Assembly (NCBI RefSeq): GCF_016433145.1
Contig: NC_058131.1
Location: 27,708,992 to 27,772,991 of the forward strand
DNA: 64,000 bases
Source of the DNA: Gracilinanus agilis
Lineage: Eukaryota
Reading direction: 5' to 3'
The translations under genes were made by a program, and so were the position numbers. Shown here piece after piece: positions 1 to 60,542 of the stretch (positions are counted from its first letter, which is position 1; each line of letters opens with the position of its first letter). The notes beneath the pieces are model-generated. The model searched no databases. It worked only from the letters and a program-made list of their open reading frames with translations, and was not told the DNA's origin.

Positions 1-195
1 GGGTGATTTGGAGATAGAAGGTACCATCAGCATTAGGCAGGGTACCACTGGAGCTCTCTTTCCCCCAGATGGCTTGTTCAGTGTCCTTTTTCCAGATTAA
101 CATGATGAATCTGGGGTAGAAGCCTGTGACCAAGCAGGAGAAGGTGATGGTGCCATTGGGAGAATCATGGCGGGACACAAATACCTCGGGTGGCA
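1..195 (-). CDS. Gene A (MHC class I-like, probable UT family) alpha3 / Ig C1 exon, 5' part; continues beyond the window start
   Basis: Not in the ORF track. Reverse complement after acceptor cttag (AG at 197-196) reads stop-free (L)PPEVFVSRHDSPNGTITFSCLVTGFYPRFIMLIWKKDTEQAIWGKESSSGTLPNADGTFYLQIT. Contains the C1-set CxxxGFYP and LPNxDGTF motifs and matches the alpha3 exons of genes B and C. Confidence 0.95.
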
Positions 196-559
196 CTAAG
201 GGAAGACAGTAAGAGAGAAGGAATCATACCTAAAGTTCATTAGAATCCTCCTTTCTTCTTGGCCTTACCCTCCCTCAATGCCCTGCCTCTTCATTAACTT
301 GCTATCTAGTCCTTTTCTCCTTCTGCCTCAGTACCTAGGACAGTTCTCTGCTTACTGCGATTTTTGTTTTTAGCTATTAGAGACTTCTCTAAAATTACCC
401 TCCATGTGTTCTGTAAATCTCTGGTATATACAAGTTATTTACATATAGTCCTCATGAGTAGAATAAGAACACCTTGAGAGCAAGGAACATTTCACCATTA
501 AAAAATTCCCTAACATTAGTTCAGTGCCTGGTATATGAGTTTAATAAGTGCTTATTCTA

Positions 560-790
560 TTAAATATTGATTGTTAGTTTTAGTTACATGATTATGAGTT
601 ACTTGATCATTTCTAATTATAATAAAATTATAATTTTTACTAATGATAATAAAATAATACTTTATATATATTTATATATGTTTATACACATAATTACTAT
701 ATATTATATTACTATATTAAAAGTAATACTTTATATAATTATTATATCTTAATATATTAAAATAATAAACTAATAAAACATTAATAAATA
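560..790. repeat. AT-rich low-complexity tract
   Basis: Almost only A/T (tata/taat runs); explains the spurious ORF 567-752. Confidence 0.8.
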
Positions 791-2066
791 GAATGGGCTA
801 CCAGGGAAGGGATTGGTTTTAGTCTTTTTATAATCTTCAAACAAAGGCTATTTGAACTATTATTGAATATATTTTTGAGGGAGTTATTTTTCAGGGTTGA
901 GGTCGCCTGTGAAGTCCTTATCAGCTCTGAAGTTCTGAGAGTTTGTCAGATCAGAAGATGTCCAAGCCAATGACAAGTGGTCATAAGCAGCCAACTTGTT
1001 CTAAGAAATTGAGTGTAGAGTTTTATTTGATATTCAATACTTGTGAAGATTGGAGATCTTCATCCCATCAACAATAATCCTAATCCTTCCAGAATGTTTT
1101 CTATGGGTATTCATCATTTTCTGCAGCTCATGGAATTCATCAAGGGGGATGGTATGGGAACATGATTCTAAACCTTTCAGATATTAGTTAACCAAACAAT
1201 ACCTAGTCTGTCTCCAACCCTGTTCTCAAAGCTTCACTTGCTAGATAGGATTGACCAGAAACAATATTTACTTGCCTTTGCCTTAAATCAAGATTCCCCA
1301 CCTATGAGCCATGAATGAAGAGAGACTGATTTTATTGGGTCAATTTTATTCAATGATTCAGTGAAATAAATGGGGTTACAGGACCTTAAGTCCATATGCC
1401 ATAAGGGAAAGGATGATGAGCTAGAGTCAAAGACTTTGACAGATGGAAATCCTGACTCTACCATTTGTGCAACCTCAAACAAAACACTTCCTTACTCTGG
1501 ACCTCAGTTTCTTCTGTAGTAACATGAAAGAGGCTGAACTACATGGCCTTGAAAGTCTGTTACAAGCTCTAAATCTATGAACTATGTAGAACTATAAGAG
1601 AACTTAGAAACAACCTATTCAAATTCTGTCATTTTACAGATGGAAAAACTAAGGCCCAGGGAAATCAAGTGAGTTGTCATGATTCAGATCTCAGATGAAC
1701 ACCTTTGATCTTTCCACTGTCAATATTTCCAGAAACAATAAAATATATGTCTTGTGATATATATTAGTTTTCATTAGTGTCAAGCAAAAAGAGTAAAACC
1801 TTGAAAATATTACTGAATTTGTACATTTTTAATATCATGTTTCAGAGAATAGCTAGAACAAAGGATATCAGGGAAACATACAAATGGCAAGGAGGTTAGC
1901 CTGGTCACATGGCAGGAGAGAAGGGTGGCCAGAATGAGGGTGACAAGAATATACCCACCATTTTCCTGGTGATGTCAGGAGAAAGCAAGGAAAGCATATT
2001 GAGTGGTTCCCCTGTGTACAACATATGGAAGGACATGGATAAGAGTGCCTTAAGATAGGCAATGAT

Positions 2067-2709
2067 GAATTAAGGTAATTATTAAGAACTATTTTGGCCA
2101 ATTATGTGGCAATAAATATGACAATCTAGGTGAAATATGTGAACATTTACAAAAATATAAATTGCCTAGATTAACAAAAGAGGAAATTGAATAATTAAAC
2201 AATCCTATCTCAGAAAAGAAATTGAACGATCTATCAAGGAACTTCCTAAGAAAAAATCCCTAGGGCTAGATGAGTCATAAGTGAATTCTATCAAACATTT
2301 AAAGAACAACTAATCCCAATACTACATAAACTATTTGACAAAATAAGCAAAGATATAAGGTAATGGACTTCTCTACTAGCAGCAGTACAATGATCCAGGT
2401 CAATTCTGAGAGACTTATGAGAAAGAACACTATCCACATCTAGAGAAAGAACTGGGAAGCAGAAACACAGAAGAAAAGCATAGGCTCGATCATGTGGTTC
2501 AATGAGGATTTGATTGGGAATGAAGACTCTAAATGATCACTCAATTGCAAATATTAATAATATGGAAATAGGTTTTGAATAATGAGACATGTAAAACCCA
2601 GTGGAATTGCTCATTGGCTCCAGGAGTGGGGAGGGGAGAGAAAGAACATGAATCATGGAGCCATGAAAAAATCTTCTAAATTAATTAATTAAATATTTTT
2701 TAAAAAAAT
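2067..2709 (+). mobile_element. Marsupial L1, composite: ORF2 fragment fused to the 3' end
   Basis: 2067-2353 is a decayed ORF2 (YDNLGE..KYKLPRLT..KKS..EFYQTFKEQLIPIL..LFD); 2360-2700 is an L1 3' end; ataggcaatg(at) direct repeats flank the whole. Confidence 0.85.
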
Positions 2710-2719
2710 ATAGGCAATG

Positions 2720-2927
2720 GGGGCAGCTGGGTAGCTCAGTGGATTGAGAGCCAGGCCTAGAGATGGGAGGTCCTAGGTTCAAATCCGGCCTCAGACACTT
2801 CCCAGCTGTGTGACCCTGGGCAAGTCACTTGACCCCCATTGCCTACCCTTACCACTCTTCCACCTATAAAGTCAATACACAGAAGTTAAAGGGTTTAAAA
2901 AAAATCTATAAAAAAAAAAACAAAAAT
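2720..2927 (+). mobile_element. SINE1_Mdo-type SINE
   Basis: ggggcagctgggtagctcagtggattgagagcc... to an A-rich tail; TSD ataggcaatg. Confidence 0.9.
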
Positions 2928-3351
2928 ATAGGCAATGATAGATGAGATGTGTTCTGTATAATTGAAGGAGACAGTTAAAATAATGGCAAAATCTCTGTGA
3001 ACATGTGACTATTTTCCCCCTCATTCAATACATGCAAATAGTATAACTATAGTAACATGGAAGTTCATGAAATTGACATTTTGTGGGGACTTTTATACTA
3101 AAAAACACTGGGTGATTACTGCCTTAGAAAATCCACAAATACAATGGCAGGACATCAGACTAAAATGGTCATCATCTAAACAAAGTAAGAAAAGAAATTG
3201 TTCTCATTTCTATGATGCCTGCTGTTTTATCAATAGAGGAAATTTCATTCACATCTCCTACTACTTAACTCCAGGGATTCATCTTCTTTACAACAGTAAG
3301 GGAAATATGACTGTACCTCCTGGAAGGAGATAGAGAAGAAAGGGAACTCAC

Positions 3352-3618
3352 GGTTTTCCTTCATGGTGGAATTCTGAAGAACTTTCTGAACTACACCAAC
3401 ACAATATTTCTTAACATAACGTTTTCTCAAATTAGTCCAGAAGAGGCTTTCCACAATGGGTTTCAAGTTTTCAGCCCTAGGGCTCTGGACCACCCAGTGT
3501 CTTTGATGTTCATCAAACTCAATCATAGTCTCTCCAACCAAGCCAATTCGTATTTTGCTATTCAACTTGATGTCATCATCTAATTCACAGCCTAATATGT
3601 ACTGCATTGTGTTATTTC
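3352..3618 (-). CDS. Gene A alpha2 exon (267 nt)
   Basis: ccag|GA acceptor (AG 3620-3619) and C|gtgagt donor. Protein (R)NNTMQYILGCELDD...HW...FWTNLRKRYVKKYCVGVV...KEN has the two alpha2 cysteines; phase 1/1. Confidence 0.95.
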
Positions 3619-4442
3619 CTGGAGGAGATAGAGAAATATGGGATACTTTTAGAGCAAATGGTACAGGAGAAGTTGATGGAGATAGTTTCTCTTGTTGGGC
3701 CCAGAAGTCATAAGGTTTATTTGGTTAACTTTGGGAATCACTTGTGTATCAGGTGCAATTATTGTGGCATCCTGTAGGAATATCACACTTCCAGCCTAGG
3801 AAGTATTATGGCCAGGCTAAGGACCTGTTAAAAGAAAGAGAAGATTAGGAGTCAATTATAATTCGACCTTTGATATGCATTCCTACTTATTTTTCTGCAC
3901 TCTATTCCTTCTGAATCTATATATGGCCTTTTCTTTTGCTTATAGACATTAGAATAACCACATTCCTGTGGTTTTGAATAGGTCAGTGGTAAGAAATAAA
4001 GGAAAAAAGAAAGTACATGTTGGAAGCCATTACCAGGAGGTGGTAGCATCAGTAGATGAGTTGTAACAGGGACTCAGAGATCAAGTAGAATTGACCCTTG
4101 AATTCAGGGAACAAGGGAGGTTTGGTAAAAAGTTTAATAGCTTGAGTTCAGATTCAATGATCAAGAAAACTTGGGAAGGGGTAAAATGTGAAAATTTCTT
4201 GGTTAAGGAGAAACATTTCCAATGGAGGATTTGGGAAAGGTTCTGGGAAGGAGGTTCTGGGAGGCATGTAGTTTGATGAATACTTCACTGCCCCTTTCCT
4301 TCAAATAAAGGATCAGTGTCCTGAGCCTCTGGACATAACAAATATGTCTGGTTCCTGGAGATTGATCCATCAGATTTCGGTGAATGGAGATAAGTTGGGA
4401 TGAGGAGAAATGTGGAGGTGGGAATAAGTGAGACCAACTTAC

Positions 4443-4703
4443 TCTCAGTCTTGGTGTCATTTCCTGTCAAGAAATGGATCAAGGAATGGGCATCCCTCTC
4501 ATGACTCTTTATCAAATGACACATCTCTTCAATGAAGTCAATCCCCAGCGCATCAGAGATCCAATCTACCTTTACTGCAAACTGATGGTTCAGTTTGTAA
4601 TAGGAAATCCACTGAATGTCATCAATAACTGCAAGACCAGTGAAGTCCAAGAGAGAGCTGTCTGTGCTCACTGCAGTGAATTTAAGTTCATTCCAGTGGT
4701 AAA
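4443..4703 (-). CDS. Gene A alpha1 exon (261 nt)
   Basis: tttag|TT acceptor and A|gtaagt donor. Protein (V)YHWNELKFTAVS...IDDIQWISY...DWIS...GNDTKTE has class I alpha1 hallmarks (H3, FTAV, DD29-30, W51, C-terminal sequon). Confidence 0.94.
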
Positions 4704-6463: not shown

Positions 6464-7698
6464 TGTTGGTATAATCTATGCCTCTCCTCCCTGACAAGCT
6501 TGGTTGGATAAGCTTGTCAGTTATCCCCTTTCTATCAGTTTGCCCAGGCAGGAAACCCTGAGAAGTTGTGTGGATGGTTAACCTCTCTAGGTCCCAACAT
6601 GAGATTGGATTAGTTGTTGATAAGGGCTATTGATTTGCTATTGGAAACATTGCAATCTGATTGCATATTGATCTCCCCTTCCCAAGTTGGGCTTTGGTAT
6701 AATAACCACTCAGGAAAGGTACTTGTTGGGCTTTGGTATAATAACCACTCAGGAAAGGTACTTGTTGATAAACACTATATTGAATCTATTGATGGAGTAA
6801 GGAAACACAGTAACAGGATTGAGGATTTAGGAAACCCTATTGCTAATTATTGACTATTAATCTAAGTTGTTGATCAAGGTCTGGAGATTGCTAGGTTTGT
6901 AGAAACTGGAGGTTCTTCACCCTCTCACTAACTCTGACCTGACTTGGCCACAACCAAGCCAGAGTTTAGGGAAGGCTATTTGATGATGTTGATAGATGAA
7001 TCAGTAAACTCTCTCAGCTCTAATAATAATGATGGTGATTGTTCTCTAGCAGTCTCAGAAGGATAACAGATTACAGGTTTCAGGTCTACCCTTCACCCTT
7101 GTTATATTCAAATCCTGAGAAATGTTGGAGTCACCTTGATTGACAAGGGAGGCAGTTGGAGAGATTGGAATGTTCCCAGATGCCTTAAGTCAGGAGCAAA
7201 GTCAGTTGGCCTGGGAGTATAAATACCCCTAACAGCCACCTGGAGGAGTTCTTGCTCTGATTTTGGACTTTGATCTCTTAGATCTTTAGGTCTCTGAATC
7301 TTCCTAGCTTTTAAGTCTCTGGGTCCCTGGGTGGTGAAGGGAGGAAGGGAGGTCTGAAGAAGCAGAGGGTGGGTAGGATCTATATATTTCCTGAAGGCTG
7401 TGAGAGCTAGTACATCTCCTAACATTGATAAGAAAGCTGAGAGAAATCACCAACACAGCTGCATCAAGGACAGTCACTCTCTGGTTTGGCATTGGCCAGG
7501 CTGAGCCAGAGGGGTTGTGAAGAACAAAAGCTTCTACTTCTACTAAGTCAATAGCATCCAGTCCTAAGTGATTATAGATCATAGATGTTAGATTGACAGG
7601 GTCTCCAATCCCCAATCCTTATCCTGTTTATCCTTTCCCTTATTATAGATTACTGATAAAGTGTTTAATAAATACCTTCCTGAGTGGTCTTTATATCA
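6464..7698 (+). mobile_element. LTR-like element (antisense to gene A, intron 1)
   Basis: TG...CA ends, TATAAATACCCC at 7218-7229, AATAAA near 7669. No PBS recognised and no clear TSD. Confidence 0.5.
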
Positions 7699-9308: not shown

Positions 9309-9431
9309 CAAGCTAAGGATTCTAATGAAATGCAAGGAGAACAAAAAGTGTGGTTCTTAAAATATAATTGTATGAGTAAGACAATGGACAAAGAAAAGAG
9401 TGTAAATTTTGCAGATTAAAAAAAACTTTAG

Positions 9432-11341: not shown

Positions 11342-11426
11342 CTGCCTGTATCTCTCTGAGAGGAAACAGCACCAGAATAAGCAGCCAGAATGAGAATGAC
11401 TCTCTCTTCCCCCACAGAGTTATCAT
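11342..11426 (-). CDS. Gene A leader (signal peptide) exon
   Basis: MITLWGKRESFSFWLLILVLFPLREIQA then G|gtgagt, a phase-1 donor compatible with alpha1. An in-frame upstream ATG at 11462 would add 12 aa. The IQA/TQA-G end is shared with the gene B and C leaders. Confidence 0.85.
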
Positions 11427-11534
11427 CTTGTTCTGTAGGTGACTGTTAGGGCTCCTCACCATTAGCCCACTTATGGGATCTATCAGTCTCCAAACCTCAT
11501 CTGCTTTATAGTGCTTCAGTTGGAATAAAGCTCC

Positions 11535-11648: not shown

Positions 11649-11675
11649 AGAAGTGGAACAGAGCCTGTGGTGAGG
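11649..11675 (-). promoter_or_regulatory. Conserved IRF/ETS + RUNX promoter module, gene A copy
   Basis: Plus-strand AGAAGTGGAACAGAGCCTGTGGTGAGG; 24/27 identical and ungapped versus the gene C copy. Confidence 0.7.
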
Positions 11676-11986
11676 ACCAGAAACCCAGAGTGGAGTGTGT
11701 CACAGTGCCATAGGCACAGCTGGCATTTGTAACTGTTAGTTCAATTAAAGAAATGCTAGATCTGAGCAGGGTGATCCACTCTTAGGGAAGTAGTCCTCGG
11801 TAAATTGGGAGAGACAGTTTTGTCCTTAAAGAGTCTCTGTTCTAATGAGGAATTATAGTCCCTTTCCAAAGTGGTCCTCCATCATAAAAGGGAGACAAAA
11901 AAATCCTCACCTTCCTGAAGCCCCAAATCTGAGGAGTCAGACAATCAGAGAGTCCTCACACTGAAATCATCAAGAATTCTGGATGA

Positions 11987-17788: not shown

Positions 17789-18441
17789 ATAGGCTGAATG
17801 GGAACATTCAAAACCACCCCAAGCAGGAGCTTGATGGGCTAAAGATCTCAGATTTACCACTGTAAGTTCTGAGCCATTTCCTATTTCATTTTCTTTGTGA
17901 TCCCTCTAAGTCTTAGACCAGTTCAGAAGTTTGCCTGGTGACAATTTCTATTATGCTCTTCTCTGCAAGTGGTCTCCTTAACATCTGGCTTCTCCTCTAG
18001 CTGGTTCATCCTTCATAGCTGCCAAAGTAATATCTCTAAAGCCGAGTTCTAACTCTCTTACTCCCCTACTCAAGAGGTTTATTAGTTTTGTTTTATCTCT
18101 AGGCTAACATACTACTCTGGTATTCAAATACCTTCCAAATCTGACTCCAGTCTATTTTTATAGTCTATAAAAAATTTAGAGAGTTATTATTCTCTAAATA
18201 GTCCAGTATTAAATAATTAATAATCCAGTATTAAAGCTGGAACCAGTGGGCAGGGAGGGGGTTTGAAACCCAGAGTCAATTCTATCTAGAAATAGGAACC
18301 AACAATGGAAACTAAAGATGGGAAAGCCTCTCAGTTAGAGTCATGCATAGTGAACAAACAGTAGGCAGTTGGGGTAATTGCTTCACCAAGAAATACACAG
18401 GCCTTTCTCAGCACTAGAAGCATCATCTGTTGGTATGGACT

Positions 18442-18595
18442 GCATTTGATCTCCTCATTGCCTGTTTCAATACCTTCAATTTCTTTTTCTTCTCTAATTG
18501 TTACTTCTAGTGTTTCTAGTACAATGTTAAATAATAGAGGTGACAATGGACATCCTTGTTTCACACCTGATCTTATTGGGAAGGCTTTTAATTTG
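18442..18595 (-). mobile_element. Internal L1 ORF2 (RT) fragment with TSD
   Basis: KQGCPLSPLLFNIVLE..IREEKEIEGI is an L1 RT motif; flanked by tggtatggact at 18431-18441 and 18596-18606. Confidence 0.9.
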
Positions 18596-22599: not shown

Positions 22600-24440
22600 A
22601 AACATCCCCATTTCTCCCTCATCCCTTCCAACATTTGTCATTTCTGATTGGTGTGAATTGGTGCCTCGGAGTTGTTTTATTTGGCCTTCCTCTAATCAAC
22701 GTGATTTAGAGCATTTTTTTCATATTACTATAGATAGCTTTTAATTCTTCTTCTGAAAATTGTCCATTTATATCATTTGAGCATTTACCAGTTGGGGAGT
22801 GACTCTTATTTTCATAAATTTGACTCAGTTCTATACTCAGTACATTATATAGCTGAGAATTGAGATCTTTATCAAGGGAAATTGCTGGAAATTTTTTTTA
22901 ATATTACTTCATTGTCCATAGATATCTTTTAGCATAATGAGATTTTCCTCTTTAAATTAGGTCTTTATTTCCTTTTGCTCTGAGGTCATAATTGCTACCC
23001 CTTGCCTTTTTTACTTCAGATGAAGTGTTTCAGATTTTGCTCCAGCCTTTATTTTGTGTGTTTTCTTCCACNNNNNNNNNNNNNNNNNNNNNNNNNNNNN
23101 NNNNNNNNNNNNNNNNNNNNNNNNNNNNNNNNNNNNNNNNNNNNNNNNNNNNNNNNNNNNNNNNNNNNNNNNNNNNNNNNNNNNNNNNNNNNNNNNNNNN
23201 NNNNNNNNNNTCTTCCTCTCTCCATTCCTCTCTTTTATTCCTAATCAAAGGTTTATTTTACTGCTAACCATTTCCTCTCTTAATCTGTCTTCCTGTTTAT
23301 CATCCCTCCACCTTTCCTTTTTCCCTTCTTCTATATCCCTATTGGGTACATTGCATTTCTATACACAACTCAACTATATGTCCATATATATTCTTCTCTT
23401 TTTGAGTTAATTCTGATGAAAATGATATCCAGCAATTTCTCACTACCATTTCCCTCACCCATTATAAAACCTCTCCCTTGCATGCCTCTAATATATGAGA
23501 AAATTTTCCTTATACTAGCTGCTCCTACAGAGATCATTCCAACATAATTGACTTACATTCATGCCCTCTGTCTATGTAAAGTCCTTCTTACTGATCTAAT
23601 AATGACTACCTGATCTAATAATAATTAATAATTGATCTAATAATAAAATTCTTAGGTATTACATGTATCAACTTTCCATAGAGAAGCATAGACATTTAAT
23701 TTTATTTTATCCCTTACGTTTACCCTTTTATGATTGCCTTTCTATGCTTCTCTTGAGACTTTTGTTAGAATGTCAAAATTTCTATTCATCTCTAATATTT
23801 TCATCAGAATGCTTGAAAATCCTCTATTTCATTAAATATTGATTTCTTCTCTGAAATATTGGACTCAGTTTTGTTGGGTAGGTTATCCTTGGTTGTAATC
23901 TTAGATCCTTTGCCTTACAGAATATTTTCTGGAGAATATATTCTCTACTCCTTTAACATGGAAGCTGCTAAATTGTGTTATCATCACTGTGGATCCATGA
24001 TATTTGAATTGGTTTTTTTTGGGCTACTTGAAGTATTTTTTCTTTGACATGGGAGCTCTGGAATTTGGCTCTAATAGTCCTGGGAGTTTTCATTTTGGGA
24101 TCTTTTTCAAGAAGTTCTTGGTGGATTCTTTCCATTTCTATTTTGCACCCTGAATGTCAAGGCAATTTTCCTTGATAATTTCTTGAATTACATCTAGACT
24201 CTTTCTTTGATCATGACTTTCAGGTAGCTAAATTCTTAAATTGTAGTCTTTCCTCTTAAATTACATCTCCTGGATCTATTTTCCAGGTCAGTTTTTTTCC
24301 AGTGAAATAGTTCTCATTTTTGTCTATCTTTTCTTTCTGTTGAGTTTTTGTTTGTTTGTTTGATATCTCATGGAATCATTAGCATCCACTTGCCCAATTC
24401 TAATTTTTAAGATATTATTTTCATCAGTGAATTTTCATTC
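22600..24440 (-). mobile_element. Old L1 fragments (ORF1/ORF2), interrupted by an assembly gap
   Basis: T-rich antisense L1 ORF1/endonuclease-like sequence. Confidence 0.65.
23072..23210. other. Assembly gap (N run)
   Basis: 139 N. Confidence 0.99.
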
Positions 24441-25890: not shown

Positions 25891-27969
25891 AGTCAGAGCA
25901 ACTAAGTAACTCAGTAGATAGAAAGCTGGACCTGGAGACAGGAAATCCTAGGTCAAATTTGGATACATCCTATGTGTGTGCCCTGGGGAAGTCACTTAGC
26001 TCCCATTGCCTAGCCCTTACCCTTTTTCTGACTTAAAACTAATACATAATATTTCTAATATACATCATATTGACTCTGTGAGAGAGAGAGAGAGAGAGAG
26101 AGAGCAAAGATTTTTTAAAATTCAAATGAGCCAATGGGAAATAATAATATCTCATGGGGATGAATGGGATTATAAAAACATCATCTAAAAATTATAATGT
26201 CATTGAGGGTCGTAGACAGATACGATGGAGTACCTGGGACTGATTTGTCATATTTTTAATGTCTTCAAAGAAGAAATGAAAATGAGGGGAGAGAAAGCAT
26301 ATAATCTTTATTTGAGATTTGTCTCCCAATATGATGTTCTTTCTCATATGTATGCCACCAGGGACTCCTAAATGGTTAAAAAAAAAACCTATGTATGATC
26401 AAGGAGAGGAGATATCTGGGTAGAGTAGGGAAATCAAGAGATCCACCTCTGCCCCATCACTAGCCTCATGATCTTGTGAAAGAATCTTCACTTCTCTGAG
26501 CCTCATAATCTTCCTCTTAGAAATAGAATAGTGGACAGAATGATGAACTTGGAGTCCAGAAGACTAGTTCAAATCCTGCCTTGGACACTTACTAGTCATG
26601 TGATCCTGAGCATATCATTTATCCTTTCTCCACCTCAGTTTCCTTATATGTAAAATGGAGATAATTATAACTTATACCTGGTTGTAGTGGAGAACAAATG
26701 AATATTTGTAAAGCATTTTACAAATTTTTAAAGGGCTAGGTAAATGCTAGCTTTTATTATTGTTACCTTAACATGCACATATCCTCAAAGTCACGTAAGA
26801 ACATACCTCAAGGGAAATAGTCTCAAAGACAGGGAATCCTGGTTTCATATTCTACCTCTGCTATCTATTTGTTATGTGACACTGAATAAATCAATTACCC
26901 TCTTAATGCCCTAAAAAAACTCACCAAGGCTCTAAACTTCAAGGAAGGTGCCAACATGCATTAACAAAGGAGTCCCTCACTAGGAGTCCCAATGCTGTTG
27001 AAATCACAGGCTCAGCTGAAATATGAACACACACACACACATATATATGTGCAAATACATACATGTGCATGTGCTATTAGCTGTATATGTTGTTTCTTCC
27101 AATAGTATGTAGTCCCCTTAAAGATGGTTACTGTCTCATTTGTCTTTGTGTCCCCAGAGTCTTACACAGTGTCTGGCACACAGAGGTGCTTAATAAATGT
27201 TTGTTTCTTGATTGATCAATCATGTAAATCAAATCAATGCTCAAACTACACAGAATGAGAGGGTTTAGGAGGATTTTGGTCTGCTCCTATGAAGTTGCAT
27301 TCACACTGAAGAGGTCATGGATCCATTGAAGTCTTCAAATATGCTTCTCATAAATCAATATAAACAGGAGTTTGTGATTCTGTTGGTAGAAGAAGTCCTG
27401 GGGAGTCCTACCTGGGCAGTCTCAAACTAATCTAAGGCTTAGTAGATAATCTTAGATGGCTGCCTTAGCTTGAGGAAATTGTAGCTTGTCCACAGCTATT
27501 AGTTGTCAGAGTCCAGATTAAACCCAGGTGTCCTGACTCCAAATCTCAGAGCCTTCTACTGCAGCTTATTACCTCTGTACTCAGAGGGAGAACCAAGGCA
27601 GAAGAAAGATCAGAGCCAAGTCTCAGAAGTGGGAGGGAGAAAGGAGAGCATTAAGGTGAGAAAAGGGAACAGGATCTGGCTGGTATCAGGATAGTTCTTG
27701 GACAAAGCTTCTTCATATCCAGCAGGAATGAGCAAATAACATCTGCAGCTGAGGCTAGCAACAGAGGATATTCTAGAGTCTTTGAAGGTCCAATTGAATG
27801 TCTGAAAAAAAAAGTTATTTCTTTTCCCCTTTTCTATATGCATGAAAATAATTCTCCTCATATCTGGGCTCTACGAAATAGCTAACCAGGCCGGCTCCCT
27901 CTATATCCATTATCCCACTCATATTTCCTTTTGGAATTCCTATCCTGGATAGGTCAGTGTAAATGGATG

Positions 27970-28115
27970 NNNNNNNNNNNNNNNNNNNNNNNNNNNNNNN
28001 NNNNNNNNNNNNNNNNNNNNNNNNNNNNNNNNNNNNNNNNNNNNNNNNNNNNNNNNNNNNNNNNNNNNNNNNNNNNNNNNNNNNNNNNNNNNNNNNNNNN
28101 NNNNNNNNNNNNNNN
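27970..28115. other. Assembly gap (N run) at the gene B 3' end
   Basis: 146 N; may hide the last gene B exon. Confidence 0.99.
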
Positions 28116-28220
28116 NTCTCTCCCTGACCTGCCCCATGAATCACAAGGTTTTTGAGATTATGGATATTTATGGTTTGGGGTAACACTCCACTTTCCTCCC
28201 ATCCTACTCCAGCATCTCAC

Positions 28221-28253
28221 CTTCCATTGTAGCACACTCATGGATGCTGTAGC
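28221..28253 (-). CDS. Gene B cytoplasmic exon (33 nt, exon-6-like)
   Basis: Branch-like cactaat + tttttac AG acceptor, then GCTACAGCATCCATGAGTGTGCTACAATGGAAG|gtgaga. Phase 1/1, encodes (G)YSIHECATME. The length equals classical class I exon 6 (33 nt in HLA-A). Confidence 0.65.
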
Positions 28254-29229: not shown

Positions 29230-29900
29230 GTATAATTTAGTCAGGTACTATAATGATAGGGATGCTCAAGACATAAACCCAGAAGAAGGGCACAACTCCA
29301 AGATGTCTGCAAGCAAAGCCTCAAAAAAAATCCCAAACAAACAGATTGGAGAGAGATTAAACTAGAATTCCTAGGGGAGCTGAGGCAAAAAAAAAAAAAA
29401 AACAAAACAAAAAAAAAAAAAACCTTTTTAAAAGAGAGTTGAACTGTGTGACCCTGGGCAAGTCACTTGACCCCCATTGCCTTAAAAAAAAAGGGAGTTG
29501 AAGATGTTTTTGGAAAAGAAATTAGATCTATGAAATAGATGAACAGATTGGCACAAGAGGTCCAAAGATTTTCACAAACAATAAACTCCTAGAAAATTAG
29601 AATGGCCAAATGAATGTTAATGATGAAATGAAAAAAGAAGAAACACTAAAAAAAAATCAAAAACTGAAAAAATAGGGGGGGAATATAAGGTATCTTATAG
29701 CAAAAACAACTGGTTTAGAAAACAGATTGAGGAAAGATAATTTAAGAATAATTAGACTACTTGAAAATCATGACCTACCTCCCTCCAAAAAAGAACCTTA
29801 ACATCAAATCTCAAAAAAAAAAAAAAAAAAAACTTAATAGAAAAGTTTCCAGATCTCTTAGATCCAGAGGGTAAGGTGGAAATAGAAACACAAATCTCTT
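29230..29900 (+). mobile_element. L1 ORF1-region fragment in gene B intron 5
   Basis: A-rich L1 ORF1-like sequence similar to 39140-40310. Confidence 0.6.
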
Positions 29901-30001: not shown

Positions 30002-30118
30002 CTGTCTTTATTTTATGCCACATGATGAAGGAAACAATACAGCTCAAAACCAGAATGACAACACCCAGGATGGTCAGAGTCAAGGTCCGAGACCTCTTTT
30101 TAGAAGATTTCACATGGA
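30002..30118 (-). CDS. Gene B transmembrane exon (117 nt)
   Basis: Not in the ORF track. cacag|TC ... G|gtatgt; (V)HVKSSKKRSRTLTLTILGVVILVLSCIVSFIMWHKIKT is a hydrophobic helix followed by a basic stop-transfer segment. Same length as the gene C TM exon. Confidence 0.92.
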
Positions 30119-30295: not shown

Positions 30296-30574
30296 CAGGA
30301 TATACTTTTGGTGTTCCCAGCTCAATATGTTCCACTACACAACCGTAATTGGTCACTGTTTCCTCTGGTGGGAGCTCAATGAAGACTCGTTGGTAGAAAG
30401 TGGAATCTGCGTTGGGCAAGAGCCCACTGGAACTCTCCTTCCCAACCACAATTTTCTTCTCCTCTTTCTGCCAGTGCAACAGGATAGAGCTGGGGTAGAA
30501 GCCAGTAGCAGAGCAGGAGAGAGTAGTAATGCCATCCATGGCTTCATGATAGGACACAGTCACGTCAGGGGGCA
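30296..30574 (-). CDS. Gene B alpha3 exon (279 nt)
   Basis: tttag|TG ... G|gtgaga; (V)PPDVTVSYHEAMDGITTLSCSATGFYPSS...LPNADSTFY...YGCVVEHIELGTPKVYP has the Ig C1 Cys pair and the YxCxVxH motif. Confidence 0.96.
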
Positions 30575-33558: not shown

Positions 33559-33825
33559 CATTTTTCTTTATACTTGAGTGCTGTAGAATTTTTTTCATGG
33601 TGTTAATACAATATTCTTGCATGTAGTGTTTCCTCTGAGTGGTCCACAGGTTACTTGTCAGCATGGGTTTGAAGGGCTCAGCCTCAGGCACCATGATAAA
33701 CCAATCCCCGTACTCTTCATCCAGCCAGCAAAAATCCTGACCATCCACAGCAATCTGGATTTCATTTCCTAGCAGGTTGTTCCTCTCAAGTTCGCAAAGT
33801 ATGAAGAGTTGCACCGTGCGGTTCA
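33559..33825 (-). CDS. Gene B alpha2 exon (267 nt)
   Basis: tacag|TG ... G|gtgagt; (M)NRTVQLFILCELE...VDGQDFCWLD...LWTTQRKHYMQEYCINTM...KKN. Confidence 0.95.
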
Positions 33826-34868: not shown

Positions 34869-35129
34869 TGTCACTCTTGGTATTGTTCTGCATCAACTTC
34901 CTCAAGAACCATAGGAAACTCTTCTCATGGTCCACTAATTTCTGCCAAGTCTCTTCCATGAACTTGGCCCCCAGGACCTGTGAGATCCAGGCCTCCTTGG
35001 CCATGAGCTGATGGTTATATTTGTTAAAGGAGAGCACCTGTACATCATCCAGAAAGTCCACAATAAAGTATTCTGAGAGGGAGCTTCCTGTGCCCACTGC
35101 TGTGAACTGTATCACATGTTTGTGGTGAG
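34869..35129 (-). CDS. Gene B alpha1 exon (261 nt)
   Basis: tgcag|CT ... A|gtaagt; (A)HHKHVIQFTAVG...LDDVQVLSF...AWIS...QNNTKSD. Confidence 0.95.
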
Positions 35130-39139: not shown

Positions 39140-40310
39140 TTTCATATACTAAACAGAACCTTTACCAGATTCTACCACTTGGTAAGTATCAAAAACTTAA
39201 AGGTTCCCCAGACCAAGCTGTGAAGACATCACAACCTCAGAAAAGATAGAAGCCCAGGGCAGTCATCTTCTCTCAGAGGTGAACAGAGCTGAATTCTAAN
39301 AAGATAGAAGCCCAGGGCAGTCATCTTCTCTCAGAGGTGAACAGAGCTGAATTCTAACACAAAATTCGAAGTCAAGAATGAGCTGAAAAAAGTAAGCAAA
39401 TAACAAAAAAAGGACCTGACCATAAAAACCTACTTATGGCAACAGGGAAGCTTAAGACACAAATCCAAGAGAAAAAATAGCTTTAAAATATTTACACATA
39501 AACCCTGAAAGAAAAAATGCAGATTTGGCAGAAACCCAACAAGCATCCCTAGGTAAGTTAAAGAAAAATTTTAAAGTAGCAGGGAAAAAACGTTCTTAAT
39601 CAAAGAAGAATAGTAAAGGATAAGTTGGGAAAATAAATAAGTGGTACACAAGAAAATTATGAAAAGATAAATAACAACTTGGTTAAAAAAGGTACCAAAA
39701 TACTGAAAAAATAACTTCTTATATATAAGAAGTGGCCAGATGGTAAATGAGGTACAAACCAATATTGAAGAAAACAAGTTCTTAAAAGTTTGACTTGGTA
39801 AAAAAGGTACAAAAATATCATTTAAAAAAATAAGTGCTTGAAAATTATAATTGGTCAAATAGAAGCTAATGACTCTGAGACATCAAGAAACCATAAAACA
39901 AAGTTTAAAATGAAAAAAAATGGAATAAAATAGAAAATATCTCAAGAGAAATGATTGACCTGGAAAATAAATCAAGGAAAGATAATTTTAACATCATTGA
40001 ACAACCTGAAAGCCATAAATAGAAAAAGGGCTTAGATATCATATTTAAAGAATTTACAAAGGAAAGCTACCCAGATATATTAAGACTAGAGGACAAAGTA
40101 GAAACTTGAAGAATACATGTTACCTCTTGAAAGAAAATCCCAAAATGAAAGCTCCCAGCAATATTATAGGCAAAATCCAAAACTCCCAGATCAAGGAGAA
40201 AATAATGAAAATAATAAAAAATAAATAATAAAATACAGTGGAGCCATGGTCAGGATCATACAAAATTTAGCATTTACTACGATAAAGAAACAAAGAACTT
40301 AAACTATAAT
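39140..40310 (+). mobile_element. L1 5'/ORF1 fragment in gene B intron 1
   Basis: A-rich ORF1-like sequence (gacctggaaaataaatcaagg, cccagcaatattataggcaaaatcc). Confidence 0.7.
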
Positions 40311-42061: not shown

Positions 42062-42155
42062 CTGCCTGGATCCTCATTACAGAAAGTACCCCCATAAAGA
42101 GCAGCAAGGATGACAAAGACCCCCTCTTTCTTTTCCTTCTCCTTTGGCTGGCCAT
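42062..42155 (-). CDS. Gene B leader exon
   Basis: MASQRRRKRKRGSLSSLLLFMGVLSVMRIQA then G|gtgagt (phase 1). Flanks are homologous to the gene A leader region. In-frame upstream ATG at 42182; the ORF-track start at 42188 is TTG. Confidence 0.85.
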
Positions 42156-42400
42156 CCCATTCCACAGGTGACTGCCTGGCATCTGCAATCACACTCTTGG
42201 TGGTAGAGGTTTCACCTTCCAAACTCTGAACCCCGGTGGTGTCCAAAAGAGAAACAAGGTCTCTATATAAACCTTGGCTCTTTACCGCTCATCTCCAGCC
42301 TAGTTTGGATTGTCCCTGCCCAGGACTAGCCCTCCTATCATTTCTGGCTGAGATATCTGTTGCTAGGCAGAAGCTGAGCATATCTGGAAGCCTTGAGAGT

Positions 42401-42427
42401 AGAAATGAAATGAAGTCTGTGGTGAAG
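42401..42427 (-). promoter_or_regulatory. Conserved IRF/ETS + RUNX promoter module, gene B copy
   Basis: Plus-strand AGAAATGAAATGAAGTCTGTGGTGAAG; 21/27 identical and ungapped versus the gene C copy. Confidence 0.6.
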
Positions 42428-43473
42428 ACAGGAAATTCTAGAGTGGAGTCACCATCAGGTGTCACTGAGAAATATGGGTGACACATATGGCATTTGTAGT
42501 GTTTGAATTTAGAAAGTACTATGTCTCATAATGGACACAAAGATGCACTCTAGAGGACTTTAATTCTGAAAACATGGACTCCTTTGTGTGTGTGTTTGTG
42601 TATGTGTGTGTGTGTGTTTCTTATTTTACATCTAACAGGGCTTAGACATTCTCATTTTCCCCACAGGCAGAGAACCTCAGTGACAAACCAATTCAAGCTT
42701 TTCCTGACCAAGAATCCCTTCTGCACCATCCTCAACAAATGAAGACATCTAATGATACCATCTGATGCTTCCTGCTTTCTGTGATGTGTTATTCCATTGG
42801 GGGATTCCTCTAGTTATTAATAAACTTTTTTTCCTTTCCCTGGAATGAAGTCTGTCTCTGCAATTTTCAATCACTGATCTTAGCTTATCCTTTCTGGGGA
42901 ACACAAGAATAATTCCTCTGATCAAATTTACTTGTGTTCTTTCTCGCTGTCTAGGATTCATAACAGATCATTGATTTAGAGAAGGAAGGGACTAGTGGAC
43001 TTATTTAGTCCATCTCTCTTATTTTACATTTGAGGAAATTGAGGCTTTTCCCAAGCTCATAGTGATAGCTGATGGTAAAGTCAAGATTTGAACTCAGGCC
43101 CTTTGATTGCAACTCCAGTGCTGTTTTCACTACACCACACTGCTCTCTGCAGCAAAACTCCTTCTTCACCCTTAGATCTTTTTCTAGGATAAAATAAGGT
43201 TGGGGTGGGGTTCTCAAAATTAAAATTCTTAGTTGTTACAATTAGTCAGCATCACCACCACCCCTCACTGAAGGCTTTAAGCAAAGGTGTGCCAAAGACA
43301 TTGTAGAAGGCTCTCTAATCCAGGTAGACTAGTTGACTTCTGCCATCTTATCCAACTCAATAAGGCCGTGTGATTCAGTAAAGTTTTCTCTTCCTCCAAA
43401 TGCCATATTATCTTGGTCTCTGTGGTCACTTTAATCTTCTCTATCTTTTCCATCAAAGAGAACCCCAATGCTT

Positions 43474-55812: not shown

Positions 55813-55822
55813 GGGGCTTCCC
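55813..55822 (+). promoter_or_regulatory. NF-kB consensus site in the gene C promoter
   Basis: GGGGCTTCCC fits GGGRNNYYCC, 40 nt upstream of the conserved module. A second kB-like GGCACTTTCC (55853-55862) abuts the module. Confidence 0.4.
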
Positions 55823-55862
55823 AGAAAGTACCTGATGATGACTGTGCTCTGAGGCACTTTCC

Positions 55863-55889
55863 CCTCACCACAGACTCTGTTTCACTTCC
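55863..55889 (+). promoter_or_regulatory. Conserved RUNX + ETS-IRF (EICE/ISRE-like) promoter module, gene C copy
   Basis: CCTCACCACAGACTCTGTTTCACTTCC. The reverse complement contains GGAAGTGAAA (ETS-IRF composite) and TGTGGT (RUNX). About 190 nt upstream of ATG 56080. Confidence 0.72.
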
Positions 55890-56079
55890 TCTCTTATGTC
55901 TGCTGAGCAGGGAACGTTTCAGCCTGGTAACAGGCATCTTAGATGACATTGAGAAGAGGGCAGGGTCTAAGCAGAGCCAACCCCATCCTGGGTAGGGTTA
56001 GAGGATGAAAAGCCATATTTAATACACAGGAGACCTCAGTTCCCTTTTAGGTACTGCCTGAGGCTGTTTGGTGTGCTTG

Positions 56080-56194
56080 ATGAAGCCAGGTAGCCCCCTT
56101 CTGAGGTCCACTGGATGTCAGAGGAGCTGGAGATGGTTCTTTTCAGCTGGGCTTCTCATTCTGGAAGTATTTGCTCTGAGAAAGACACAGGCAG
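56080..56194 (+). CDS. Gene C leader exon
   Basis: Not in the ORF track. MKPGSPLLRSTGCQRSWRWFFSAGLLILEVFALRKTQA then G|gtaagt; 115 nt = 38 codons + 1, phase 1. Confidence 0.85.
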
Positions 56195-56299
56195 GTAAGT
56201 GTAGAGAGAAGGGGGTTCAGTAGACAGTGTAGAGACAATGGAGCTTTTGGTCTGATGGGGAAAACTTATTCATTGCCTTTAAAAGGTTTGAGGTAAGGC

Positions 56300-57130
56300 A
56301 GTCAGTCAACAAACATTTATTGAGTATATTTGTTGATTAATTCATTATTAAGCATATTAAACATAATTATTGTTATACTCCAGTAAAAATGCTAGGTACT
56401 GGGGATACCACCACCACCAAAAATAAAATAAACAGAAAGAACATAGTCCCTGCCTAAAAGGAGCTCATGCTCTAAGAGGGAGAGAACATGTAAATTCAAA
56501 AATAACTAGATACATCTAAGGGAGATGAAAAATAATGGAAAACTAACAATTGTTATCCGTGATGGAATGTTTGATGTGAAATATGGTAAATGGGCTAATT
56601 TGACTGAAATGTTAAATGCATGAAGGAGAGGACTAGGAATATAGCCTAGAAAGGAAGACTGGAATCAGAATGTGAATGACTTTAAACACCATTAGCTGCC
56701 AAAGTTTGTATTTCATCATAGAAGAAGTAGGGAACCACTAAAGTCTTTTGGAGATGGAGTGTGGTGTGCTTTGGGAATAGAAAATGGGAAGATTGGGGAG
56801 GACCGATTGAAGAAGGAGAATTCAAAAGAAAGAAACTCATTTAGAAGGAGATTGCCAAGATCCTGGCAAGAGGGAATAAGGGCCTGAACTATGGTGGGGG
56901 ATGTGTGAATGGAGAGAAAGAAAGAAAGATGTGAGAGAGGAGCTGGAGGCAGAATTAGCTGGGCTTGGCTGCTGGTCCGATATTGAGGAAGGACAGAGAG
57001 AGGGAAGATCTGAGAATGGATCTGAGATTACAAACTTGGATGATGAGAATATTAGGGCTATTCTTGGCAAAAATAGAAAGTAAGTGAGAAGCATGGGTTT
57101 ACAGAGAAATGAATGACAACGTTTTTGACA
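56300..57130 (-). mobile_element. L2 fragments in gene C intron 1
   Basis: cagtcaacaaacatttattgag... L2 3' signature and a purine-rich body. Confidence 0.65.
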
Positions 57131-57625
57131 TACTGAGTTTCAAATACGGAAAGATAATCTAATTGAAGAGGTCTGAAAGGAAAGAGTTTTTTAATAAACA
57201 TTTATTAATCCTCTATTATTCAGTAGGTACTGTAATAAATCCCTTATAAATGCCTCCTTTGAGTACCAATAAAACAATAAGCATTCAGTGTCTTTACTAT
57301 TTTCATTTTATGGATAATGAAATTCAGGTTTAAAGAGTTTAAGATCATACAGCTTAAATGTCTGAAGCTAGATTTGAACTCAAGTCTTTCTAATTACAAG
57401 CCCAGCACTCTATCCTCTGAACCAACTAGCTGATGATAGTTGGAGCTCAAAAGAAAGAGACTATGAGTTGGATATGTACATTTTGGAGTCACCTGTTCAG
57501 TGACATTTAATAATAGTAGGAGACAGAGAAAGGGCAAAGAAATGGCTGAGAGGAGGCTCTGGTCCTCTGGTATCCCCAAACCTGAAACATCATCTTCTCT
57601 TCTTCTCTTCCTTTCTATAATTCAG

Positions 57626-57889
57626 CCCACCACAGGCATATGATTCAGTTGACCGCAGTGGGTACAGGCTACTCTGTCTTGGAACTAAGTGCAATTAGCC
57701 TCATAGATGATGTTGAAGTGGTGTTTTATAACAAAGCACAGAAGCAAATTGCTATCAAGATACCCTGGGTCTCCAAACTAGTGGGAATTAATTATCTCAC
57801 ACAGCTACATGATTTATTGGTGAGCCATGAGCAACATTTCCACTGGACATTCCAATTCTTACTACTACGGAATAACACTAACCCAGACA
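57626..57889 (+). CDS. Gene C alpha1 exon (264 nt)
   Basis: ttcag|CC ... A|gtaagt; (A)HHRHMIQLTAVG...IDDVEVVFY...PWVS...RNNTNPD. Confidence 0.95.
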
Positions 57890-58732
57890 GTAAGTCAGGT
57901 TTCCCCTCATCCTGTTTTTCATTATTTTGTCTGTTTGTCTCCCAAGCCCAGCAGATCCATGGATCCCCAGTAGGTCATACCACTGAGACAAATTTCTTTG
58001 GGCCCTGTCCACTGTATATACTTCCCTGGAGAAAGAACTATCAAGGATCCAGCCCTGGGCCTTAGGCTTCACCCAGTTGGATTAACATCCAGGATCACCA
58101 TCTCCTATAATCCTTTTAAGAGATTTCTACCTTCTGCCCAGCGACTTTCACTCCATGCCAAAATTTCTTAATCAATAAACCTGAACTCATAGAATAAGTC
58201 CCATGCTCTCCTTCAGTCCCAGAGCTTAGAAATGTGCTACAGTCCATCCTAGTTACTGATCTCTCTCTTCATCTGGATTTCAGACATTAGTTCTAGCACC
58301 AACTCCTTTCATTATCTTTTACTCCTGCAATTACCCACAACAGACACACTAAGTAATTTCTGGGTTTTGTTTAAAAGGAAAGAAAATACTCAAACTCAGA
58401 TACAAATTGTCCATAGAGCTTTGAGAGCAAAAAAGTGCACTAAGAATTTGGGGATGCACTGCATAACATGATAGTTCAAGCTGTATGGAGTAGAAATGAG
58501 CATAGCCCCAGAATGAAGAGAACCTAACTCCTAAGTTATTCTATGGTACCTGAATTTCCTGTGATTCTCTAGAGACAGTCCAACTTGATTGTGAGCCACA
58601 AGCTATAAGTAGCTCCCAATGTTTTTAAAAAAGGAAAATCCTTTTCATACATCTCCCCCAAAAATGGGCTCCTCCTTTGGGTTCCCTGTCCTCTTTCCAC
58701 CCATAAAAACCCAACTCTGTGTTCCTCCACAG

Positions 58733-58999
58733 GAAACCACACAGCCCAGCTCCTGGGAGAATGTGAAGTGGACAATGACATCACAGTAAAGAGTCATGCC
58801 CATTTAATTTGGGGTGGGAAGGAAAGTTACCGGATAGATGAAGAGGTTGGGCATTGGGAGAACATAGATCCTGATGTCAAACGATACCAACATGTTCTGG
58901 AGAGACCTTTATGGACCAATCTAAGGAAACGCTACATGAAGCTATTTTGTGTTGACATAATGAGGAAAATCGTTGAATATTCAAGCATAAGGGATAATG
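58733..58999 (+). CDS. Gene C alpha2 exon (267 nt)
   Basis: cacag|GA ... G|gtgagt; (R)NHTAQLLGECEVD...HW...LWTNLRKRYMKLFCVDIM...RDN. Confidence 0.95.
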
Positions 59000-59149
59000 G
59001 TGAGTGTTAACTTCTTCCCATCTCCTCCTTAAAGGTCTAGGTTACCTCCGCAATCCTTTTCAGTCCCAGAGAAAGAGACTGCAACCCCACCTTCTGATCA
59101 TAGACCCAGCTGACAATGGGAAATTTTGTTTTAATGTGAAAAAGTTTGC

Positions 59150-59405
59150 ATTAAGTTCTTTTTTCCTTCTTTTCTTTTTCTTCCTTTCTTATTTTCTTTT
59201 TTCTTTTCCATATTTCCTTCCTTCTCTCTATTTTCATCTATCCTTTTTTCCTTTCTTTTTTCTCTACTTTCTTTTCTTTTTACTTCTTTTTTTCTGTTAT
59301 TTAAGTCCTTTCTTTCCTTCCTTTCTTTTCTCCTTCCTTACCTTTTCTTTTCTTTCTCCTTTCTTTCTCTCTTCCATTCTCTTCTTCTTTACTTTTTCTA
59401 TTCTT
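59150..59405. repeat. Polypyrimidine low-complexity tract (about 250 bp) in gene C intron 3
   Basis: Nearly all C/T (ttc/cttt runs); explains the spurious Phe-rich ORF 59004-59408. Confidence 0.9.
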
Positions 59406-60024
59406 TAAGTTAAAGTCTCACCCCCATGACTTATCAAAGGTAGAGGGTAATCCTAGGAGCTAAGAAATCATGGCAGCAAAATACATATTCTGAAATGATC
59501 TCCCAAAGCTGAGAAATCTTTGTTCACAGTACCAGGGATGATGAACTATGTATTTGCTGTGTAAAGAGCTGTCTAGCCAAATTTGAAACATTAGGATGCC
59601 GGCCACAAGTAATATTTTACTTTTATTTGGGGAGGTAGTGACAGAGATACATGAAGGATAGCCTAGTAAGAATGGTGGGTATTCAATCTTAATGATCAGT
59701 AGTATCCCCACTGATTCAATCATGGGTCATAGAAGACTAAGCTTCTTGAAGATGGTTTAGAAAGCTATTGGTGATAAGTTTGTCAAAACCAACTGATGGT
59801 GACTCAGTAACTAGCCGTTAACTTAGCACTCTTTCGGGTGTCCAGAAAGATACATAGGAATAAAAAGTACTCTCAAGGACCTGATGGATCCATTGGGTAC
59901 AAGAGCACAGGAGATGCTGCAATAAGGAAGCTGAGAGCATTCATGAAGTTAAAGATAAAATGGAAGCATCAAACACTGACTAAGATTGTGACATGAGACC
60001 TTCTTCCTTGATCTCTCCTCCTAG

Positions 60025-60303
60025 TGGCCCCAGAGGTGGTTGTATCTCAACATGTCAGCCCAGAAGGCAGCATCATTCTCTCCTGCATTGCCACAGGTTT
60101 CTACCCTCGCTCCATCATCATGCACTGGGAAAAGAATGGGAAGCTGGGGATATGGGGAAATGAGAGTTCCAGTGGCACCCTGCCCAATATGGATTCCACC
60201 TTCTACCTCAAAGTTACCTTAGAACTCCCACCAGAGGACTCAGGTGCAGGTTATACCTGCGTAATAGAACATAGTGAGCTGAAGAGTCCTGCTATGTATT
60301 CAG
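60025..60303 (+). CDS. Gene C alpha3 exon (279 nt)
   Basis: cctag|TG ... G|gtcagt; (V)APEVVVSQH...LSCIATGFYPRS...LPNMDSTFY...YTCVIEHSELKSPAMYS. Confidence 0.96.
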
Positions 60304-60425
60304 GTCAGTGTTTTAGCCACATACTCTCATTACATCCCTAAGAAACTTAGCCCCAGAGTTCCATTCTCTCCCCACTTCTTTCATTGAATGCACACTCACT
60401 TACATTCTACTCTTTATTTCTATAG

Positions 60426-60542
60426 TCCCTAGAAAAACCACTAAAAACAAGCCTTGGATTCTTGCACTGGGCATCATGTTAGCTGTCATGATACTGCTGA
60501 GCTGTGCTGGGGTATTCATCAAATGGAAGATGAGGAAGACAG
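60426..60542 (+). CDS. Gene C transmembrane exon (117 nt)
   Basis: Not in the ORF track. tatag|TC ... G|gtatgc; (V)PRKTTKNKPWILALGIMLAVMILLSCAGVFIKWKMRKT. Confidence 0.92.

Follow-up and report, generated by a model that had tools for sequence, protein, structure and literature searches.

To which family do the class I-like genes on a 64,000-nucleotide (nt) stretch of the Gracilinanus agilis genome belong, and are they intact? The stretch (contig NC_058131.1, positions 27,708,992 to 27,772,991 of the forward strand), hereafter the window, carries three such genes, here called A, B and C, which an earlier sequence-only reading had taken for members of the UT family, a class I family of marsupials and monotremes outside the major histocompatibility complex (MHC). 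The best explanation of the window, and one we hold with high confidence, is that it represents the UT9-UT8-UT7 segment of the extra-MHC UT class I cluster in a didelphid opossum. Gene identity, exon structure, orthology and, within the limits stated below, intactness are established here. The UT family and these loci were published in 2015–2016 (PMC4509613, PMC5101759), and a 2025 review only lists the family and adds nothing functional. The window contains no new kind of gene; it holds a second didelphid's copies of UT7, UT8 and UT9.

Three class I-like exon sets

Exactly three class I-like exon sets, with no additional copies, were found in the window from six-frame open reading frames (ORFs) and tblastn searches with the exon translations. 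Searches and trees were run exon by exon. Within the window, the three paralogs match one another at tblastn E values of 1e-14 to 1e-31, and no window match below E 0.09 was obtained with the exon translations beyond the exons of A, B and C. Pfam MHC_I was assigned to four of the six alpha1 and alpha2 ORFs (A alpha2, B alpha1, B alpha2 and C alpha2; E 5e-10 to 1.6e-3), with the curated cut-off passed by A alpha2 and B alpha2 alone, and Pfam C1-set was assigned to the alpha3 ORFs. ORFs, tblastn and Pfam agree with the sequence-only reading on the presence and places of the three sets.

Nucleotide-level reading covered all 16 exons. Their internal borders are AG/GT, all junctions are phase 1 and every exon is free of stops, as had been claimed. 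The alpha1 exons measure 261, 261 and 264 nt in A, B and C, respectively, the alpha2 exons 267 nt in all three, the alpha3 exon 279 nt, and the transmembrane (TM) exons of B and C 117 nt. The alpha1, alpha2 and TM sizes, together with a 33-nt tail exon that lies in B, are those given in the earlier reading. Gene B has seven coding exons, C at least five, and A at least four before the window edge, in line with the class I plan of 5–8 exons. The description of three full, intact sets holds for B, which is complete, and does not hold for A, which is cut at the window start, or for C, in which no tail exon or stop was identified. The term tandem array fits B and A, which lie head-to-tail on the minus strand; C lies on the plus strand, head-to-head with B.

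The encoded proteins have further class I features. Both conserved alpha2-domain Cys residues, the classical class I alpha2 disulfide pair, are kept in A, B and C, N-glycosylation sequons occur at the alpha1/alpha2 border, and the TM segment is accompanied by a basic stop-transfer sequence. The homologous leader exons (121, 121 and 115 nt in A, B and C) each end in CAGGCAG before the donor GT, and annotated marsupial relatives have N-termini that match all three. Intron 1 measures 6.6 and 6.9 kb in A and B, respectively, and 1.4 kb in C. Amino acid identity among A, B and C is 33–41% in alpha1, 33–36% in alpha2 and 54–62% in alpha3; judged by this divergence, they are old paralogs.

Family membership and synteny

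With HMMER, a profile built from the alpha2 exons of A, B and C was run against 1.84 billion proteins. Its best single-domain matches belong to marsupials (Sarcophilus, Dromiciops, Trichosurus, Vombatus and Monodelphis), and the next to platypus and echidna. Class I proteins of fish and reptiles rank after the monotremes, and some of them are lifted by multi-domain run-on models. Exact motifs of B are found in md_UT8 and of A in md_UT9, two predicted opossum peptides from the supplement of PMC4509613. In the per-exon trees, which were built without reference rows for MR1, CD1, ZAG, HFE and FcRn, B pairs with ModoUT8 in alpha1 and alpha3 (Shimodaira–Hasegawa-like approximate likelihood ratio test, SH-aLRT, 99); in the alpha2 tree the two are neighbours at an unresolved fork. 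In each of the three trees B lies within a UT8 clade, with support of 98–100. The partner of A is its Dromiciops ortholog (SH-aLRT 99 in alpha1 and 88 in alpha2), and C falls in a six-member clade (SH-aLRT 99–100 in alpha1 and alpha2). For alpha3, the positions of A and C are left unresolved by the tree.

On chromosome 1 of the M. domestica assembly MonDom5, UT7 (−), UT8 (+) and UT9 (+) are located at 705.406, 705.429 and 705.459 Mb, respectively (PMC4509613 supplement). Order, orientation and spacing of the three neighbouring genes compared are the same in the window, inverted. The alpha1-to-alpha1 spacing is 30.4 kb here and 30.0 kb in MonDom5 for UT8-UT9, and 22.5 and 20.7 kb, respectively, for UT7-UT8.

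Sequence data thus support the assignment of A, B and C to the marsupial/monotreme UT family. This membership, proposed in the sequence-only reading, is confirmed by the md_UT8 and md_UT9 motifs, the identity between B and UT8, the per-exon trees and the marsupial and monotreme relatives, and the comparison with the M. domestica assembly suggested there gave matching gene order, orientation and spacing. Grouping with MR1, CD1 or ZAG, which are among the alternatives named in that reading, was not observed: MR1 and HFE match weakly, and neither CD1 nor ZAG is among the 13 alpha1 and 60 alpha2 sequence matches listed.

Two observations concern names and numbers in this family. Proteins P0002, P0006, P0111, P0117 and P0134 bear the RefSeq names 'zinc-alpha-2-glycoprotein-like', 'hereditary hemochromatosis protein homolog' and 'MR1-like', and another RefSeq name on these UT proteins is 'H-2 class II ... 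beta chain-like'. Such database names of UT proteins are misleading best-hit labels. The numbering in PMC4509613 is seemingly shifted between the primers of Table S2 and sequence files 3 and 4: the 'mdUT8' primer encodes the N-terminus of md_UT9, and the 'UT6.a cDNA' carries the stop of md_UT7. UT numbers are therefore best taken from coordinates.

Gene B, the UT8 ortholog

Gene B is the sole complete gene of the three, with 1107 nt and 368 codons in its seven coding exons, the last of which is preceded by a T-rich acceptor. Its exon plan is identical to that of M. domestica UT8 (ENSMODG00000023068; RefSeq P0117, 359 aa; Papenfuss 2015, Krasnec 2016), and protein P0117 carries the md_UT8 sequence. 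B shares 91, 92, 96 and 92% amino acid identity with P0117 in alpha1, alpha2, alpha3 and TM, respectively. Agreement with M. domestica UT8 extends to the last two coding exons (GYSIHEC.T.E in the 33-nt exon and DIQLDLQ.. in the final one), and the two genes have like neighbours in like orientation. The differences are small: exon nucleotides differ by about 6% (by eye), which indicates another didelphid, close to M. domestica, gene B ends in RL where M. domestica UT8 ends in GH, and an upstream in-frame ATG adds nine codons relative to M. domestica UT8, as it does in Trichosurus P0114. Compared with the published cDNA, UT8 exon 2 has about 8 replacement and 6–7 silent codon changes in 82 codons, giving a ratio of nonsynonymous to synonymous change (dN/dS) of about 0.4 by a rough hand count.

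The UT8 tail, G-Y-S-I-H-E-C-x-T-x-E followed by D-I-Q-L/M-D-L/I-Q, is near-invariant from opossums to Australian marsupials (P0114–P0117, P0006, P0110–P0112). That UT8, including this 20-residue tail, is near-fixed between opossums and across marsupials is a gain of the present comparison. The tail fits no known sorting motif, and its near-fixation across marsupials suggests a cytoplasmic partner. A related tail, G-H-x-x-H-E-x-A-T-V, was seen in a UT10-like lineage (P0128, P0132, P0133).

One of two assembly gaps in the window (27970–28116) begins about 100 nt downstream of the 33-nt exon of B, and no reading frame runs across it. The gap was taken as intronic, with its two sides ordered and on the same strand, because GYSIHECVTIE and DIQLDLQGH are adjacent in M. 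domestica UT8. Spanning both gaps, the B-to-A alpha1 distance measures 30.4 kb (30.0 kb in MonDom5), which argues against a large misjoin. Intron 1 of gene B contains a near-perfect tandem duplication of a 58-bp unit (39241–39357, with one N at 39300).

Gene A, a UT9-like gene

Identities to md_UT9 and to md_UT3–7 were read by eye from the peptides in the PMC4509613 supplement. By this reading, identity between gene A and md_UT9 is about 91% in alpha1, about 95% in alpha2 and about 92% in the available part of alpha3. Like md_UT9 (chr1:705459481-705469054, unannotated in Ensembl 75), gene A adjoins the UT8 gene in the same orientation, and its large first intron fits UT9 as the largest opossum UT gene. 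The alpha1-to-alpha3 span differs, with about 4.8 kb in gene A and 9.6 kb for md_UT9 in MonDom5. Alpha3 runs off the window start after 195 of about 279 nt, leaving its last third, the TM segment and the tail outside. A near-perfect tandem duplication of a 39-bp unit is present in intron 1 of gene A (6686–6767).

Gene C, in the UT7 slot

Gene C shares motifs with the M. domestica UT3–UT7 subgroup and is about 93% identical to it in alpha3 (by eye). Its alpha1-to-alpha3 distance is 2.68 kb, compared with 2.70 kb for UT7, and it lies head-to-head with the UT8 gene, as UT7 does in M. domestica. Unlike the situation for UT8, alpha1 and alpha2 of C are only about 70% identical (by eye) to UT6 and UT7, with no clear one-to-one ortholog. 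The md_UT7 gene has an in-frame stop in alpha2, where it reads YMKL-stop-C; gene C is open at this codon, with TTT preceding the second conserved Cys. The UT7-slot gene is thus open here and broken in M. domestica, which is a new point, and the UT3–7 subgroup turns over quickly. With the TM donor unused, the frame of gene C stops nine codons on (TGA 60566–60568).

An ORF of 64 nt at 57016–57079 (+), in intron 1 of gene C, has an ATG start and a strong GTAAGT donor in phase 1. It was rejected as the leader of gene C in favour of 56080–56194, which is homologous to the leaders of A and B and to marsupial UT N-termini; it may represent an alternative first exon or a chance occurrence. A short interspersed repeat with the core GTGACTTGCCCAGGGTCACACAG occurs in the 3' flank of gene C (61340–61440, +) and in intron 5 of gene B (29440–29480, −).

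A shared promoter block

A 27-nt block upstream of gene C (55862–55888) recurs upstream of gene A with 3 mismatches, where 0 occurrences are expected by chance, and in a more diverged form upstream of gene B. In all three genes, the block combines a RUNX-like ACCACA with an IRF/ETS-like TT(T/C)CA(C/T)TTC and lies about 190–250 nt upstream of the ATG, with TATA-like boxes between block and ATG. The conservation of one promoter block in all three genes is a new point. Judged by its motifs, the combination of RUNX-like and IRF/ETS-like elements would fit thymocyte expression.

Groove, fold and proposed function

Classical class I molecules hold peptide termini with eight anchor residues (Y7, Y59, Y84, T143, K146, W147, Y159 and Y171), and this set is not conserved in A, B and C. 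Aligned to classical chains by HMMER without gaps, A/B/C have F/L/Y in place of T143, M/I/V in place of K146, L/V/L in place of W147 and I/V/I in place of Y171. The Y59 position is F/F/Y, and among the aligned anchors, with Y84 left out, Y159 alone is kept in all three. The Y7 position, just outside the aligned stretch, is I/L/I by manual extension. Hydrophobic residues make up 35–44% of alpha1/alpha2, a measure of composition and not of groove geometry. An AlphaFold2 model of opossum UT8 (P0117), used as a stand-in, has a full class I fold with a predicted local distance difference test score (pLDDT) of 79. Compared with known structures, the model reaches Z 23.4 for H-2Kd, 22.9 for a marsupial class I molecule and 20.6–21.2 for ZAG, CD1, HFE and a shark non-classical chain.

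Transcripts of opossum UT8 were found only in developing alpha-beta thymocytes (PMC5101759). Opossum UT genes show low polymorphism and are expressed in thymus and skin, and the hydrophobic sites of UT alpha1/alpha2 are about twice those of classical class I and comparable to CD1 (PMC5101759). Each gene of the window is predicted to encode a type I membrane glycoprotein with a signal peptide, an alpha1/alpha2 platform, a C1-set alpha3 domain, a TM segment and a short tail, and would be driven by the shared TATA promoter with its RUNX-like and IRF/ETS-like block. At the cell surface, the products would be non-classical class I molecules, probably paired with beta2-microglobulin, whose short hydrophobic groove may be empty or occupied by a small ligand that is hydrophobic or not a peptide. 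Their part in T-cell development (that of UT8 in thymocytes) and in surveillance of skin or thymus may be that of ligands or co-receptors, and they would not present peptides to CD8 T cells in the classical manner. Taken jointly, a non-classical surface molecule, a hydrophobic or empty groove and a role in T-cell development or surveillance are proposed tentatively, at slightly below even likelihood.

The chain mu of the T-cell receptor (TCR) is found in marsupials and monotremes, the same distribution as that of the UT family. UT genes might encode the ligands by which a T-cell subset confined to non-eutherian mammals, for example TCR-mu cells, is restricted or selected, an idea that we consider improbable. 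If it were true, the RUNX-like/IRF-like block would give the thymocyte expression.

Alternative explanations

Several points weigh against an intact UT9-UT8-UT7 segment with the products proposed above. Gene A is incomplete within the window. No credible tail exon or stop was found for gene C past its TM exon by a splice-site scan and tblastn with the tails of eight or nine relatives. In alpha1/alpha2, identity between gene C and the M. domestica UT3–7 genes is only about 70%, so that the UT7 slot of C is assigned by position, and ModoUT7 itself is stop-bearing. A search of sequencing runs for the species returned one DNA-like run and no RNA run. The fold search (Z 20.6–23.4) cannot part classical class I, ZAG, CD1 and HFE and is silent on the ligand, and we know of no ligand, partner or receptor of a UT molecule.

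Some of these points would also be expected if one or more of the three genes were unexpressed or decaying pseudogenes, an explanation that applies most readily to C and is on the whole unlikely. The missing tail exon and stop of C, its greater distance from opossum UT3–7 (about 70%) than that of B from UT8 (91–92%), the lack of RNA in the run search and the alpha2 stop of md_UT7, its positional counterpart, all of whose ModoUT7 transcripts are stop-bearing, would suit decay. Yet none of the five C exons contains a stop and their AG/GT borders are intact, the position of the md_UT7 stop codon is Phe in C, the promoter block and leader of C are conserved, and the alpha2 Cys pair is kept in all three genes.

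The two remaining alternatives concern the kind of gene, and both have very little probability. That A, B and C belong to another class I-like family, ZAG/AZGP1-like, HFE homolog or MR1-like, is the least probable of all. The NCBI names of the closest marsupial proteins (ZAG-like, HFE homolog, MR1-like) and the Z of 21 between the UT8 model and the ZAG and HFE structures point that way; those names, however, are automatic best-hit labels, and the M. domestica UT8 product is among the proteins so named. AZGP1 is secreted and has no TM segment, whereas B and C carry 117-nt TM exons. No ZAG chain was present among the 13 alpha1 matches or the 60 alpha2 matches listed in the sequence search, and no CD1 chain among the 13 alpha1 or 60 alpha2 matches listed in the PDB sequence search. 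For alpha1/alpha2, Pfam gave only PF00129 (MHC_I). The MR1 alpha1 match is at chance level (E 0.15) and the HFE alpha1 match weak (E 0.016), and the best PDB sequence matches are classical class I chains. The 2015 phylogeny also sets UT apart from AZGP1, HFE, MR1 and CD1 (PMC4509613). Those same classical chains, as the best PDB matches in both sequence and fold, and the published homology models with an open, short groove like that of chicken B21, could suggest classical-type, peptide-presenting class I genes relocated out of the MHC, which is scarcely more probable. Against this, five of the eight peptide-end anchors are hydrophobic in all three genes (Y7 by manual extension), the polymorphism of opossum UT genes is low and their expression restricted (PMC5101759), and the neighbours are 33–41% identical in alpha1/alpha2, indicating old fixed lineages and not alleles. 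The UT9-UT8-UT7 segment is retained as the best explanation of the window.

Coordinates of features and intergenic remains

The features of the three genes and the assembly gaps are listed in Table 1. In the A–B intergenic region, a 77-aa ORF at 18331–18564 (−) has a reverse-transcriptase-like motif (..GCPLSPLLFNIVLE..) and is, by this motif, probably an L1 fragment. A gathering scan of window positions 1–56200 with Rfam gave no match.

Table 1. Promoter blocks, exons and assembly gaps in the window (by-eye identities are marked).
Feature	Position	Strand	Remarks
Gene A promoter block	11650–11676	−	RUNX-like ACCACA and IRF/ETS-like TTCCACTTC
Gene A leader exon, 121 nt	11342–11462	−	ATG 11462; donor GT, phase 1; matches marsupial UT N-termini
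Gene A alpha1 exon, 261 nt	4443–4703	−	~91% to md_UT9 (by eye); 63% to Dromiciops P0002
Gene A alpha2 exon, 267 nt	3352–3618	−	Pfam MHC_I E 9.5e-7; exact motif in md_UT9
Gene A alpha3 exon, first 195 nt	1–195	−	acceptor AG 196–197; open frame; 83% to P0002
Gene B promoter block	42402–42428	−	promoter alignment; more diverged than the A and C blocks
Gene B leader exon, 121 nt	42062–42182	−	ATG 42182; second ATG nine codons on is the opossum UT8 start
Gene B alpha1 exon, 261 nt	34869–35129	−	91% to ModoUT8 P0117
Gene B alpha2 exon, 267 nt	33559–33825	−	Pfam MHC_I E 5e-10; 92% to P0117
Gene B alpha3 exon, 279 nt	30296–30574	−	Pfam C1-set E 1.6e-10; 96% to P0117
Gene B connecting-peptide/TM exon, 117 nt	30002–30118	−	92% to P0117
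Gene B cytoplasmic exon, 33 nt	28221–28253	−	GYSIHECATME; opossum UT8 tail GYSIHECVTIE
Gene B last coding exon	27773–27801	−	DIQLDLQRL, stop TAG 27775–27773; opossum UT8 ends DIQLDLQGH
Assembly gap	27970–28116		gene B intron 6
Assembly gap	23072–23210		intergenic, between A promoter and B 3' end; 4.5 kb from nearest exon
Gene C promoter block	55862–55888	+	promoter alignment
Gene C leader exon, 115 nt	56080–56194	+	62–77% to N-termini of P0001/P0130/P0138
Gene C alpha1 exon, 264 nt	57626–57889	+	~70% to md_UT6/UT7 (by eye)
Gene C alpha2 exon, 267 nt	58733–58999	+	TTT (Phe) at codon of md_UT7 in-frame stop
Gene C alpha3 exon, 279 nt	60025–60303	+	Pfam C1-set E 6e-12
Gene C TM exon, 117 nt	60426–60542	+	open frame

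Comparison with classical class I, CD1 and MR1

The UT proteins resemble classical class I molecules (H-2Kd, 2fwo; marsupial, 7edo; chicken BF2) in overall fold, with the Z scores of 23.4 and 22.9 given above, and have in common with them the alpha2 Cys pair, Y159, a C1-set alpha3 domain and the phase-1 plan of one exon per domain. They differ from classical class I in sequence, with 23–24% identity when the ModoUT8 stand-in model is aligned by structure. UT alpha1 and alpha2 are each 3 residues shorter, and T143, K146, W147, Y7 and Y171 of classical class I are replaced. Unlike classical class I genes, UT genes are not linked to the MHC, have low polymorphism and are restricted in expression.

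Like human CD1 and MR1, UT genes are non-polymorphic and lie outside the MHC. The alpha3 motif LPNAD.TFY of UT proteins presumably recalls CD1/MR1. The hydrophobic composition of the UT groove is comparable to that of CD1 (Krasnec 2016). UT proteins differ from CD1 and MR1 in showing no sequence grouping with them in the Pfam and PDB sequence searches and in forming a separate lineage in the 2015 tree.

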